DNA from: Dendrobates tinctorius
Lineage: Eukaryota
Assembly: GCF_039654945.1 (NCBI RefSeq)
Contig: NW_027361716.1
Span: forward strand, 14,074,001 to 14,138,000
Reading direction: 5' to 3'
Length of the DNA: 64,000 nt
A program made the position numbers and the translations under genes. The notes beneath the pieces were generated by a model. That model worked only from the letters and a program-made list of their open reading frames with translations. It had not been told where the DNA came from and searched no databases. Below are positions 6,588 to 11,479 of this stretch, piece after piece (the stretch's first letter is position 1; every line of letters begins with the position of its first letter).

Positions 6588-7801
6588 TATGGCGCCCCTG
6601 AGGCTTCAGTCACCACAGAGGTACTGCACCTCCTCCTGAAGTGTGGTACCCCACTATACAGGTAAGGTGGAGACACCTGACCACACTCCAACACTCACAT
6701 CCCACACGCACACCAGTAGTGTGGCAGAGCAACCTTTGTGGCTCCCTGCTTGGAACAGTGCTGGGAGCTGGGTGGAGCTTAGACTGCACAAGAGAGCGGG
6801 AGAATATTAGGAAATAGTCAGTTGGTGAGAGAAGATCCCCAGAGAGGGATGGAGTGAAGGAAGTGCTGCAGCAGACTCCTGTGACCTGGAGCTGCTGGCA
6901 CAGGAAAGAGCCATAGAAAGCCTGATTCTTCAGAGGGAAGAAAGATTAGTGCGGAACATAAGGAGAAGAGAACTATGGACTGGTTTCAGAACAGAGCCCT
7001 TCCTCAAGTTTGAAGCGCATGGCCGGAGTCCGGTCTCCGAGGTTGTATGGATACTGATGTTCCTGCAGCAGAAACCGGAGGAATAGAAGTCGTCACCACT
7101 TTATTCCCATCGAAGACTTGGGGGCACAACAGCAACATGGGTGAGCCGGGACATGATAGCAAGAAGTCCCCGAAGCAGGCTACAGCTGTCTGCCATACAA
7201 GTAGAGTTGTAAGTAACATCAAGAAGGAGGAACTTCAGTTTAATACTCAAGTACAACTCCTCCAGATTTGGCGCTAGTATGGAGACGTTCAGAGAAGGCA
7301 CATGTTGGAGGAGTGCTGGAAAGGTGTACTTTACCTTGCCTGGGAGTTTGGCTGAGCCCCTGACCTGGAGGACACGGCACTGAAGCGGGCATCTGTGCGC
7401 ACCAGACTGTGAGTATAGCCTTTGGAACTACATGCCCTTGTGTCCTCCACTTCTTCCTGCGCCTTGCACCCGGCTCTGCTACATCTACTTCTTTACACCA
7501 TCTCCCCATTTACCACCTTCATCTACTCTGCCCTGGGACTACAGCTCCACCTGTGGGGAGCTTCAACATCATTGCTGCACCACAACATCTGTCCCAGAGG
7601 AGCAACCCTGCAGCGCTGGTCAAACTGACCAGAAACCACAGGTGGCGTCACGAATCATCCACTTATAAACTTTAATCAGCCACGCTTTACCCCTTTTACA
7701 TGGACGCCCAGGGCCACGGACCGGGTCACCGCTACTGTGACACTTCCCTCTGAGATACCGGCCTGGTACCGAGTACCCCACGGCCCCTGGCGGGCGATCC
7801 A
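6588..7801 (+). repeat. 5' LTR
   Basis: TATGGCGCCC (TG mutated to TA)...GGGCGATCCA; roughly 95% identical by eye to 10269-11479. Confidence 0.92.
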
Positions 7802-7804
7802 TTT

Positions 7805-7822
7805 TGGCGTCACGAACAGGAT
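7805..7822 (+). promoter_or_regulatory. Primer-binding site for tRNA-Ser(CGA)
   Basis: TGGCGTCACGAACAGGAT, 3 nt after the LTR end, is the complement of the 3' end ATCCTGTTCGTGACGCCA of a vertebrate tRNA-Ser(CGA) as I recall it. Confidence 0.85.
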
Positions 7823-8024
7823 GACAAAGCCTAGTATCACCGGGTCCTGTGTGCTGAAGATTTATTGGACTTAAAATTGCTGAGAATGTGCAAAAGAACC
7901 AAAATGATAGACTATAAAATGGACTCTCAAAATGGCCACCGGCGCGGTGAAGAAGGGCATAACAACATGGGTGGCCCTAAGAAAAGAGCGCGAACTGTCC
8001 TGGGCCTCCCCTGCCTGAACTTCT

Positions 8025-9593
8025 ATGCAACAGCAACATGGCCCACCCCCAGAGGGATTTGTATACTGGCTTGGTATGGAGGAAGAGGAAGAAGGCGCCG
8101 CCCTAGGAAGGAGGAGCAAAGCCCTGTGGCAGGAAGGGAGCCCAGAGAGAAGCCAGGTCGCCATGATGGAAGGACGGAGGCCTGAAGAGCGCGAGGAAGA
8201 GGAGCTTGCCTTCTCTGGCGCAGTAGTTGAAGGCTCCAGCCCTGCTTCTGTGATGGACCGTCAGCAGCTGGAGGAAGAAATCGCCATGCTGAACCGCAGT
8301 CTGCGGCTGAAGCAGGAGGCTCTGCAGGCCTTGGATCGGCAGTGCACCCAGGAGGGGCCTGCAGAAACGGTACCTCCACCACCGGTACCCGCCGCCGCTG
8401 CACCAGTTCCACCCCAGGCACCACCTGTGAAACCTGCGGCCGCTGCAATGCCATCGGCAGCGCCTGCCAGCACCTCCACGCTGATACCGCTGCTGGGTGC
8501 TGGCTGCCAGGAGGAGTTACCAGAGGACCCGGGAGCTGAATGTGAGGCAGAGACTGTGTTTTTGTCTGGACCTGGCGCGGCCGCGCAGGTCCCACTGGAG
8601 GTCTCCGCCGTTCCTGAACCAGCACCAGCTCCAGTAACCACCGCTGCCACCAGCCGCCGTCCAGTGGATGCACCGGAGTTGGAACACCGTCCTGAAGCGT
8701 CAGGTATGACCGCCGCCCCTGCAGCTGGGGAGACCTCTGAGTTCCCGTCCGCTCCAACGTCCGGGTAGGTTGTGCTGGACCTAGTCTGTGACCGGGATAC
8801 TAGTCCCGGGGGGGAAACACCCGAACAACTGGCAGTGGTGCGCATGTCCGCTGTTGGCAGAGGCCGGTCCCGAGAGGAGGAGGAGAAGGAAACCCGCTGC
8901 CAGCAGACTATCCGCAAGCTGGCAGCAGAACAGCGGGAGCAGAGGAGGCTGGCAGTGCTGGGCCCTGACCTCGACAGGAAGCAAAAGGCCCACGCCGGAC
9001 ACTATGGTCCTCAGGACTCAGCCGGATGGGGTCGGGTCCTGAATTTTAATTTGGAAAGGGGGTTTGGTTTCATCTCGGACCCCCAGAAAATCTCTGACTT
9101 GTTTGTAAGCCGGAGGGATGTAGAGTCCCACCTCCGGAGGGGACACCCCGTCTGTGATCTACACAGGGGGGATTACATGACATTCACCCGCCATGAGGGG
9201 CTGCGCGGCTGGTATATCCTGAATGTGCGCCGCATCTCTGAGGAGTTCATAGCGGCCTATGAAAAGGACAGGCCTACGTTCCTCTGGCAGAGGCCGTTCC
9301 CACCTTGGTATTTGCACCCACCAAAGCCAAGCAGGCCACATCCACGGAAGTAAAGCACCGTTGCTATCCCTGCTGTGCCACAGGCAGCAGTTCCGCCAGC
9401 TGTCAGGCCAAAGACCAGAGCAGCTACCACGCCATCAACAGCTGCTGAGCTACCACCGCAGGCAGCCATTCCCCAAGCCCAGCAGGAGGACTATGGACCA
9501 TATGTGATGCCACCAGGTGGCGGCCATCCTGAAAGTCTTCCCTGGAAACCGAAGAAACCTGCTTCCACCACCCCAGGAGGGGACCACCACTAA
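8025..9593 (+). pseudogene. LTR-internal reading frame of about 520 codons: coiled-coil / Pro-Ala-rich / cold-shock domain / Pro-rich, interrupted by two in-frame stops
   Basis: ORFs 8025-8768, 8772-9353 and 9375-9593 share one frame and are separated only by TAG (8766-8768) and TAA (9351-9353). The CSD at 9030-9236 reads GRVLNFNLERGFGFI...DLFVSRRDV...GDYMTFTRHEGLRGWYILNVR. Confidence 0.75.
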
Positions 9594-10268
9594 GTACATT
9601 TCTAACTGAACTGTTACCCAGGAGGGTATGTGCCCTCATTTTCTGTGTTTTCCCAGTTTGCCCAGTTGTCACCCATTTTATTGAACTGAGTGATCATGAA
9701 CTTGGAGTGATCCACAAACTTTGCTTGTAAATAGTTTGCGCCTCATAAGGTGCTGTCTCTTGGTTTTACATGAGCAGTCTTCAACAAGGACTACCTCAGG
9801 CCCGAGTTCTACTTCAGCTACAGAGACACTGCAAGAAATCCCGGCTGGGATCGGTGTCCAGCCCTTGCAAGAATTATTGCTGTCTTACTGTGAAGTCTTT
9901 TATATTGTACCTTATAAAAATGTTGGTAGCAATGTTTAGCTGCAGTATTAGAAATGGATGTTTTGCAGAAAGTAGTTTAGAAGTGATCTTTGATAAAAAT
10001 GTACAGTTCTTTGAATAAAAACTTGAATTCAGGTGATGAACCAGGGTCAGCGGTTGTCACCAAGGTAGCGCTTCAGATAGTAGTAGTAAAACTAAAGTTA
10101 TCTTAGGTAACGTTAAAAGTAAAAGTGCCTCTCTTAGAAGATGTTTTATTAGTAGTATAAGTAATGTTTACTTCAGGCAGTACTGTTAAAATAAAAATTT
10201 TGTATGTTCCTTATGTAGCATCCTTTGTTTCACTTGCAGCCCGGGACGTGCTGTGTTTAACGGGGGTA

Positions 10269-11479
10269 TGTGGCGCCCCTGAGGGTTCAGTCGCCACAGA
10301 GGTACCTCACCTCCTCCTGAGGTGTGGTACCCCACTATCCAGTTAAGGTGGAGACACCTGACCACACTCCAACACTCACATCCCACACACACACCAGTAG
10401 TGTAGCAGAGCAACCTTTGTGGCTCCCTGCTTGGAACACGAAGAGTGCTCGGAGGTGGGTGGAGCTTAGACTGCACAAGAGAGCTGGAGAATATTAGGAA
10501 AGAGTCAGTTGTTGAGAGAAGATCCCCAGAGAGGGATGGAGTGAAGGAAGTGCTGCAGCAGACTCCTGTGACCTGGAGCTGCTGGCACAGGAAAGAGCCA
10601 TAGAAAGCCTGATTCTTCAGAGGGAAGAAAGATTAGTGCGGAACATAAGGAGAAGAGAACTAAGGACTAGGGTCAGAGCAGAGCCCTTCCTCAAGTTTGA
10701 AGCGCATGGCCGGAGTCCGGTCTCCGAGGTTGTATGGATACTGATGTTCCTGCAGCAGAAACCGGAGCAATAGAAGTCGTCACCACTTTATTCCCATCTA
10801 AGACTTGGGGGCACAACAGCAACGTGGGTGAGCTGGGACATGATAGCAAGAAGTCCCCGAAGCAGGCTACAGCTGTCTGCCATACAAGTAGAGTTCTAAG
10901 TAACATCAAGAAGGAGGAACTTCAGGTTAATACGCAACTACAAGTACTTCAGATTAGGCGCTAGTGTGGAGACGTTCAGAGAAGGCACATGTTGGAGGAG
11001 TGCTGGAAAGGTGTACTTTACCTTGCCTGGGAGCTGGCTGAGCCCCTGACCTAGAGGAAACGGCACTGAAGCGGGCATCTGTGCGCACCAGACTGTGAGC
11101 AAAGCCTTTGGAAGTACATGCCCTTGTGTCCTCCACTTCTTCCTGTGCCTTGCACCCGGCTCTACTACATCTACTTCTTTACACCATCTCCCTATTTACC
11201 ACCTTCATCTACTCTGCCCTGGGACTACAGCTCCACCTGTGGGGAGCTTCAGCATCATTGCCTCACCACAACATCTGTCCCAGAGGAGCAACCCTGCAGC
11301 GCTGGTCAAACTGACCAGAAACCACAGGAGGCGTCAAGAATCATCCACTTTAATCAGCCACGCTTTACCCCTTTTACATGGACGCCCAGGGCCATGGTCC
11401 GGGTCACCGCTACTGTGACTCTTCCCTCTGAGATACCGGCCCGGTACCAAGTACCCCACGGCCCTTGGCGGGCAATCCA
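10269..11479 (+). repeat. 3' LTR
   Basis: TGTGGCGCCC...GGGCAATCCA, preceded by AACGGGGGTA (PPT) and followed by the TSD CTAT. Confidence 0.92.

Follow-up and report, generated by a model that had tools for sequence, protein, structure and literature searches.

Non-autonomous elements with long terminal repeats (LTRs) are usually viewed as non-coding hitch-hikers or as parasites that carry Gag only. The MaLR elements of mammals, reportedly described by Smit in 1993, are said to be long-lived non-autonomous relatives of ERV-L that have an LTR pair, a primer binding site (PBS) and a polypurine tract, lack pol and contain a non-retroviral internal open reading frame (ORF). ORF1p of the long interspersed nuclear element (LINE) LINE-1, built from a coiled coil, an RNA recognition motif (RRM) and a C-terminal domain, is a nucleic-acid chaperone with cis preference. 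Recently, 46 endogenous retroviruses (ERVs) of birds were reported to carry cold-shock domains (CSDs) that had been captured several times, and a possible benefit to the virus was inferred (2025, Mol Biol Evol, PMC12287698). The Xenopus class III ERV XtERV-S possesses gag, pol and env, 705-bp LTRs reading TGT..ACA, 5-bp target duplications and a tRNA-Ser(AGA/TGA) PBS (PMC8278194). In this study, we analysed 64,000 nt of the Dendrobates tinctorius genome (assembly GCF_039654945.1, contig NW_027361716.1, positions 14,074,001 to 14,138,000, forward strand), and "the window" refers to this whole stretch. Positions 6588-11479 of the window are occupied by a member of a non-autonomous LTR family of hyloid frogs, whose sole gene encodes a constrained protein made of a helix and a CSD.

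Like the bird ERVs, the frog family consists of retroviral-type elements that acquired a PF00313 domain. However, the bird elements were found through their reverse transcriptase (RT) and so retain pol, and the position of their CSD varies, whereas the frog family is pol-less, its CSD protein is the only ORF, and the window element contains no RT. With XtERV-S the family shares an anuran host, the tRNA-Ser(AGA/TGA) PBS (in one relative, L004) and LTRs opening with TGT; by its description, XtERV-S differs in having gag/pol/env, 705-bp LTRs that end in ACA and 5-bp duplications. MaLR elements are reportedly also pol-less, mobilised in trans and equipped with an internal ORF unrelated to retroviral genes, but they are said to make 5-bp duplications and their ORF to have no recognised domain, whereas the frog duplications are mostly 4 bp long and the ORF contains a defined RNA-binding fold. 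The plant elements BARE-2 and Bs1 are similar in that they parasitise an autonomous partner with one ORF kept, or carry transduced host sequence. However, the BARE-2 ORF is a true Gag, and the host fragments of Bs1 are not conserved as a functional protein family. As in LINE-1 ORF1p, a helix or coiled coil is followed by a small single-strand nucleic-acid-binding domain, with disordered regions, but the two proteins are not homologous, the domain is an OB fold instead of an RRM and the element class is different. A defective retrovirus with a transduced gene is likewise not what was found, as there are no gag, pol or env remnants and the CSD is only 26-29% identical to YB-1/YBX2 structures. 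In the literature searched, which did not extend to Repbase and Dfam, no paper on a pol-less CSD-only family or on this frog family was found. A first interpretation of this DNA (the sequence-only reading), made with no database searches, knew of no description of such an element. Within the literature searched, this holds for a pol-less family with a CSD as its only cargo, but not for CSD-carrying elements in general, since the RT-bearing bird ERVs of 2025 (PMC12287698) were found as the sole precedent.

The element and its single gene

The region 6588-11479 is an LTR retroelement, with the following features (window coordinates, strand, description).

6584-6587, +, target-site duplication, 5' copy, CTAT, matching 11480-11483
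6588-7801, +, 5' LTR, 1214 bp, opening TA (TG in the 3' copy) and closing CA
7805-7822, +, PBS of 18 nt, tRNA-Ser type, sequence TGGCGTCACGAACAGGAT
7823-7860, +, conserved leader right after the PBS, similar by blastn to the related locus L001
8025-9593, +, long reading frame of about 520 codons, three pieces in one frame
8253-8342, +, N-terminal helix, probably a coiled coil, starting MDRQQLEEE, with a counterpart modelled in the related protein P0001
8766-8768, +, in-frame stop TAG, first break
8871-8999, +, predicted long charged helix immediately before the CSD, residues 35-77 of the middle piece in the AlphaFold2 (AF2) model
9030-9236, +, CSD of the Y-box type with long loop, as indicated by Pfam, profile match, AF2 and Foldseek
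9351-9353, +, in-frame stop TAA, second break
9683-9769, +, conserved non-coding block after the ORF, with hairpins at 9692-9712 and 9738-9753
10237-10268, +, conserved block with a short G-run polypurine tract, adjoining the 3' LTR
10269-11479, +, 3' LTR of 1211 bp with ends TG..CA; its terminal hairpin (7 bp) lies at 10269-10298
11480-11483, +, target-site duplication, 3' copy, CTAT, same as 6584-6587

The LTR boundaries agree among direct-repeat search, blastn and MAFFT. Both LTRs are 94.4% identical over 1218 columns (blastn), and the MAFFT alignment contains 54 substitutions at 1204 aligned sites plus 15 gap columns, corresponding to a Kimura two-parameter (K2P) distance of 0.046. With a neutral rate of 1-3e-9 per site per year, which is our assumption, this divergence of 4.6% places the insertion roughly 8-23 million years ago. 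The PBS starts three bases beyond the end of the 5' LTR, and the G-run at 10262-10266 adjoins the 3' LTR. Thus LTR pair, target duplication, PBS and purine run are all present. A second copy was not found by blastn elsewhere in the window. A partial second PBS-like string, 12-15 nt of which are identical to the real PBS and which is directly preceded by CCACAGG, lies at 7643-7654 and at the matching place of the 3' LTR, about 150 nt before the LTR 3' end; it is also kept in L001 (about 13171) and L007 (about 1814, minus strand). An 8-bp indel at 7662-7669 contains the sole TATAAA near the 5' LTR end and is missing from the 3' LTR. All 169 N of the window fall outside the element region.

The 2.5-kb interior contains a single long frame (8025-9593), which is interrupted by the TAG and TAA stops into the pieces 8025-8765, 8769-9350 and 9354-9590. 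The middle piece matches frog proteins in HMMER searches (E 1e-16 to 1e-12), and the third piece has a C-terminal motif ending in LPWK in common with one of these proteins, P0002 (E=0.014 in a single pairwise comparison), so that the whole frame can be read as one gene. With its two stops, the window copy is a dead copy. Read-through of the TAG in the manner of gag-pol was considered and rejected, because no stop occupies this position in relatives and, given the age of the copy, the TAG may be the result of decay. Neither Gag, protease, RT, integrase nor Env was found in the interior, and no interior ORF of the window element or of its relatives has a retroviral Pfam match; the capsid, protease, RT/RNase H and integrase of an autonomous LTR retrotransposon or retrovirus are therefore absent.

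The protein plan can be seen in the intact 481-aa relative P0001. Its AF2 model starts with a low-confidence N-terminal helix and a helix at residues 82-123 (predicted local distance difference test, pLDDT, about 70-76), continues with a disordered, proline-rich stretch of approximately 100 residues and a helix at 230-275, and ends with the CSD and a disordered tail. Outside the helices and the CSD the pLDDT is below 50, and no capsid-like or other further folded domain was modelled. The helix at 82-123 would be the counterpart of the N-terminal helix in the window frame and the helix at 230-275 that of the charged helix, which is predicted with a pLDDT of 82-96 in the middle piece. The shared ORF plan, as modelled, is thus an N-terminal helix, proline-rich disorder, a long charged helix, a Y-box-type CSD and a disordered tail. 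The N-terminal piece itself has no significant pairwise similarity to the relatives. Outside the core of helix and CSD the copies are not significantly similar, apart from the motif ending in LPWK, and the proline-rich tails cannot be aligned to each other.

For this part of the locus the sequence-only reading proved accurate in most respects. Its outer coordinates were exact, as confirmed by the LTR ends and the CTAT flanks, and the paired LTRs, CTAT duplication, 18-nt tRNA-Ser PBS and polypurine tract were all located as it had claimed. Its view of a reverse-transcribed, integrase-inserted element without own enzymes, and without capsid, protease, RT or integrase motifs, agrees with the LTR, duplication and PBS found, with Pfam, which is blank for retroviral domains on the interior ORFs, and with the P0001 model. 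Only the extent given for the cargo (8772-9353) was too small, as the frame runs from 8025 to 9593.

The cold-shock domain and its relatives in other frogs

In Pfam, the CSD of the window copy matches PF00313 with E=3.1e-5 and 24.2 bits, which is under the gathering score of 27 bits. Three relatives exceed this score (L006 with 43.5, L004 with 35.9 and L005 with 32.1 bits) and three lie just below it (L007 with 26.5, L003 with 23.8 and P0001 with 23.7 bits), while an NCBIfam scan returned weak Csp matches only. The window CSD alone reached only E 0.8-1.7 with Y-box proteins, and its matches to Csp and Y-box proteins of known structure were weak. When eight family sequences were combined into a profile, YB-1, YBX2 and zebrafish YB-1 were detected in PDB at E about 1e-11 and 48 bits, with lower scores for bacterial Csp proteins (45 to 31 bits), LIN28 (24) and CARHSP1 (23). 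This profile aligns ungapped to YB-1 through the long loop that separates strands 3 and 4 in Y-box proteins, whereas bacterial Csp proteins require a gap. The AF2 model of the middle piece forms a five-stranded OB barrel (strands at residues 86-94, 99-103, 110-114, 136-144 and 147-155; pLDDT 76-90). Foldseek aligned it to CspA, CspB and CspC with template modelling (TM) scores of 0.86-0.89 and to the YBX1 CSD with 0.77; its aligned identity to the YB-1/YBX2 structures is the 26-29% given above. Taken together, profiles and structural model indicate that the window frame contains a genuine Y-box-type CSD.

In YB-1, W65, F74, F85 and H87 are the residues that stack on RNA, as known from CSD-RNA structures. 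The positions of F74 and F85 are retained in the family, but those of W65 and H87 are replaced in all eight sequences and are never aromatic or His. Invariant among the eight are G88, V90, G98, G100, I102, F112, V113, G134 and G147 (middle-piece numbering), and the family retains GFGFI, which resembles RNP1, as well as the FV of RNP2. Because the two replacements are seen in every family member, they reflect remodelling and not decay of the window copy. In likeness to YBX1 and YBX2 (FRGY2), the family thus has the best profile match, the ungapped long loop, GFGFI and FV; it differs in the two stacking positions, in its unrelated flanking domains and in being a single exon between LTRs. Host Y-box genes are multi-exonic and encode alternating basic and acidic C-terminal clusters, whereas the ORFs found here are single-exon and have proline-rich tails. 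We infer that the CSD was derived long ago from a host Y-box gene and was then remodelled, with two of four stacking positions replaced and with a loop that became strongly conserved.

Among 1.84 billion representative proteins, HMMER found 57 matches to the middle piece. The top five and two further ones are frog proteins; the others contain multiple CSDs and derive mainly from environmental or transcriptome data. The frog proteins are listed below.

P0001 and P0005, Anomaloglossus baeobatrachus, named uncharacterized
P0002 and P0036, Ranitomeya variabilis, named uncharacterized
P0003, Phyllobates terribilis, named uncharacterized
P0004, Ranitomeya imitator, unnamed in NCBI and "CSD domain-containing protein" in UniRef
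P0051, Bufo bufo, "Y-box-binding protein 2-A-like" in NCBI

Word-indexed protein searches returned nothing, or the query and one relative; such searches are dominated by low-complexity words, and only a few of the copies have a protein annotation. An exact look-up of the 247-aa piece of the window frame had no match. In the DNA around the seven proteins, six ORFs lie between their own LTR pairs, which are 95.6-100% identical. LTRs thus flank seven of the eight places inspected, namely the window element and the loci L001 and L003-L007, which together represent at least five species of frogs; the eighth place, L002, is a fragment within a mis-annotated gene model. The six related LTR-flanked loci have the following properties.

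L001, LTR pair of 1284 bp, 99.5% identical; PBS the same in 18 of 18 positions
L003, repeat of 339 bp, 95.6% identical; no PBS match within 3 mismatches; more LTR-like matches close by
L004, LTR pair of about 1245 bp, 100% identical; PBS of the tRNA-Ser(UGA/AGA) type
L005, LTR pair 99.9% identical over the part compared; PBS the same (18/18); a Penelope-like insertion divides the ORF
L006, LTR pair of 1132 bp, 96.8% identical; PBS with one mismatch (17/18)
L007, LTR pair of 1174 bp, 99.7% identical; PBS the same (18/18)

Target duplications of 4 bp occur in L004 (ACAA) and L007 (TATC), which together with the window makes three out of five copies with LTR ends determined; L001 fits a 5-bp duplication, GGCCC. 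As flanks and duplications differ among the loci, these are independent insertions, and the window element is one member of a non-autonomous LTR family of hyloid frogs. The window-type PBS, which we take to match a tRNA-Ser(CGA)-like gene, is intact in L001, L005 and L007; its sequence did not occur in the literature searched, and Rfam and tRNA scans of the window were empty. In L004 the PBS reads TGGCGTAGTCGGCAGGAT, which is identical to the 5' end of antisense template oligonucleotides for human tRNA-Ser (PMC3299991) and thereby links the family to priming by tRNA-Ser. An open ORF is present in copies whose LTRs are 99.5-100% identical, and among young copies it is open in four species. Old subfamilies coexist, since the CSDs of copies within one species are only 48% identical (L001 and L005; L003 and L007).

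Constraint was estimated from 66 CSD codons of seven natural copies (21 pairs), which are 30-59% identical in amino acids. In all 21 pairs dS was saturated (1.5-3.4) or not computable, with dN between 0.38 and 0.93. A codon model gave omega (dN/dS) of 0.04 and fitted better than omega fixed at 1 (2dlnL=163). The number is rough, but its direction is clear and indicates strong constraint on the CSD.

These results bear out the claims of the sequence-only reading on the domain and its family. It had aligned 9030-9236 to the CSD of YB-1/FRGY2, and Pfam (sub-threshold for the window copy), family profile and AF2/Foldseek agree. The changes it had read, stacking W to N and RNP2 H to S, are correct, and its view that the domain is too diverged for a plain YBX retrocopy is supported. 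It had proposed a family that maintains its own CSD protein, and had suggested a search of other amphibians and an estimate of dN/dS over the CSD. Homologues do exist in Anomaloglossus, Ranitomeya, Phyllobates and Bufo bufo, so the interior is not single-copy, the six further LTR-flanked loci have homologous ORFs, and neutrality is the worse fit for the CSD.

Several further observations were made at the related loci. In the Bufo locus L006, a 155-aa ORF (7515-7982) containing a PPAY (PPxY-like) motif that is absent from other copies lies upstream of the CSD ORF (8001-9089), in frame and separated by one stop, and the tail after the CSD is much longer and has a predicted coiled coil. The CSD ORF of the young Anomaloglossus copy L005 is interrupted by a Penelope-like element (about 1367-5983), which is bounded by a perfect 263-bp duplication (1104-1366 and 5984-6246) and whose ORF has RT-like motifs and a GIY-YIG-like end, with no Pfam match at E<0.01. 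Two young copies lie within or beside tandem satellite arrays (L001 7784-8450 and 13320-13860; L007 11571-14167). L007 contains a second LTR in reverse orientation (about 1684-2905), 76-80% similar and with no PBS beside it.

Conserved RNA signals and possible roles of the protein

Between otherwise unalignable copies, blastn recovered four blocks, namely the LTR start, the LTR end with PBS and leader, a block before the 3' LTR and a block after the ORF. The first approximately 65 nt and the last approximately 90 nt of the LTR are similar to the LTRs of L001, L003 and L007, and the LTR-end block extends through the PBS into about 40 nt of leader (window 7758-7860 with L001 9690-9794, 76%; a similar string follows the PBS in L004 and L007). 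The block before the 3' LTR at 10233-10299 matches L001 11997-12066 (83%) and L005 8292-8345 (85%), and L004 has the same arrangement. The 7-bp stem at the LTR terminus reads TGTGGCG/CGCCACA in the window, TGTAGCA/TGCTACA in L004 and TGCAGCG/CGTTGCA in L007, with paired changes between subfamilies. The block at 9683-9769, which sits 90-150 nt beyond the stop codon, is 81% identical to L007 9382-9466 and L003 7270-7333. In its first hairpin (9692-9712), five of six pairs are changed on both sides among six copies, and 91.7% of the cells pair, compared with 19-48% when the partner column is slid. Of 500 shuffles, between 0 and 3 equalled the observed values on four of five measures, whereas the remaining measure, further pair types, gave no separation, as 396 shuffles reached the observed value. 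The second hairpin (9738-9753) is less supported, as it was noticed by eye and in a bacterial-type promoter/terminator scan only. Members of the family thus keep the LTR-end hairpin, the tRNA-Ser PBS with leader, the block and G-run before the 3' LTR and the hairpin block after the ORF.

Since no member encodes enzymes or a capsid, these must come in trans from an autonomous element. The likeliest explanation in our opinion, though little better than an even chance, is that the protein serves as the element's own RNA chaperone and packaging adaptor. The sequence-only reading had listed this role as a possibility, along with mimicry of masking proteins and anti-silencing. The protein would bind RNA transcribed from the element itself, where the conserved hairpin block may be the binding site, and act on it in the way that nucleocapsid does in retroviruses and ORF1p in LINE-1. 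The RNA would thus be stabilised and steered into the particles of a helper, and the tRNA-Ser primer together with helper RT and integrase would finish the insertion with a 4-bp duplication. Host YB-1 supports RNA metabolism and virion production of human immunodeficiency virus (HIV) (PMC6040738), and YB-1 is also present in assembling particles of mouse mammary tumour virus (MMTV), together with Gag (PMC4486188). Several points weigh against a chaperone and adaptor role. W65 and H87 of the stacking platform are lost throughout the family, so that RNA binding of the canonical CSD type is not assured; the N-terminal part is alike among copies in architecture only and not in significant sequence; omega derives from 66 codons of seven very diverged copies with saturated synonymous sites; the covariation of the hairpin rests on six sequences; and no helper element was found among the frog loci analysed. 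As candidates for such a helper, the 1142-aa ORF of L005 was rejected because it is the Penelope-like insertion, and the minus-strand second LTR of L007 because no PBS or interior is present on the side seen. The mostly 4-bp duplications speak against a class III (ERV-L-like) helper such as XtERV-S; they fit class I or foamy-like retroviruses, or Ty3/gypsy elements.

Alternatively, the protein might act on the host. By mimicking or competing with Y-box proteins, it could lift the translational masking of germ cells or weaken RNA-based silencing, and in either case expression of the element or its helper would rise. The loss of two stacking residues together with a very conserved loop would fit a shift to a specific partner, and the family profile is nearest to YB-1/YBX2. 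However, no observation made here indicates a target in the host, the element itself has a conserved, structured block of RNA adjoining the ORF, and a benefit in trans would also be available to cheaters lacking the ORF, so that long-term retention in every copy is explained less well; we regard such a role as unlikely. Slightly less credible still is an origin of the short elements by deletion from an autonomous frog retrovirus, which would replicate in full-length form and encode the CSD protein either in an accessory gene or within Gag, much as in bird ERVs. CSDs occur in RT-detected ERVs from two major groups in birds (PMC12287698), and frog ERVs with a tRNA-Ser PBS exist, e.g., XtERV-S (PMC8278194). 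Nevertheless, all seven LTR-flanked copies share the short form across several genera and deeply diverged subfamilies, and the sole longer interior (L005) is due to the Penelope-like insertion. Moreover, no protein of Gag-Pol length with this CSD was present among the representative proteins searched by HMMER, and duplications of the XtERV-S type are 5 bp long, in contrast to 4 bp in three of five copies read. It is highly improbable that the ORF has no function and is transduced host sequence that merely spread as a passenger of successful LTRs. The breaks in the window copy would agree with such a passenger, but the CSDs of the family remain 30-59% identical in amino acids despite saturated synonymous sites and an interior that is otherwise beyond alignment, omega is far below 1 and the ORFs are open in young copies of four species.

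If the protein is indeed a chaperone and packaging adaptor, it is tempting, though rather speculative, to regard the helix-plus-CSD protein as a third kind of RNA-coating and chaperone protein of retroelements, besides the zinc-knuckle nucleocapsid and LINE-1 ORF1p. It might allow a pol-less LTR element to be packaged into helper particles, with the CSD recruited independently in frogs and in bird retroviruses. Together, the frog family and the bird captures suggest that Y-box-type domains give retroelements a recurrent advantage. In the frog family one non-retroviral RNA-binding protein appears to have been kept under strong constraint from toads to poison frogs, and some copies have LTRs of up to 100% identity and are young enough for present activity. 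The family offers a simple system for probing the advantage of a CSD, as it has a single ORF, cis signals that are defined and a candidate hairpin in its RNA. It may also account for some of the repeats in the very large genomes of dendrobatids. At present, its ORFs carry host-gene annotations ("Y-box-binding protein 2-A-like", "uncharacterized protein"), which are worth correcting.

Other features of the window

Elsewhere in the window, three Tc1/Sleeping-Beauty-like transposase ORFs were observed (18726-19805, 28727-29464 and 34850-35581, the last on the minus strand), the first of which is open and encodes 359 aa with helix-turn-helix (HTH) and DDE_3 domains. The region 14001-18000 has a strong negative GC skew (-0.43 to -0.56), with a LINE endonuclease fragment alongside at 15382-15915. 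An interstitial telomere-like (AGGGTT)n run of about 47 units is located at 45672-45947. Two satellite arrays at 53892-55709 and 56899-59010 consist of 65- and 66-bp units in 28 and 32 copies, respectively, with 92-93% matches, and an apparent ORF of 596 aa on the minus strand (57177-58967) is merely the 66-bp satellite read in frame.

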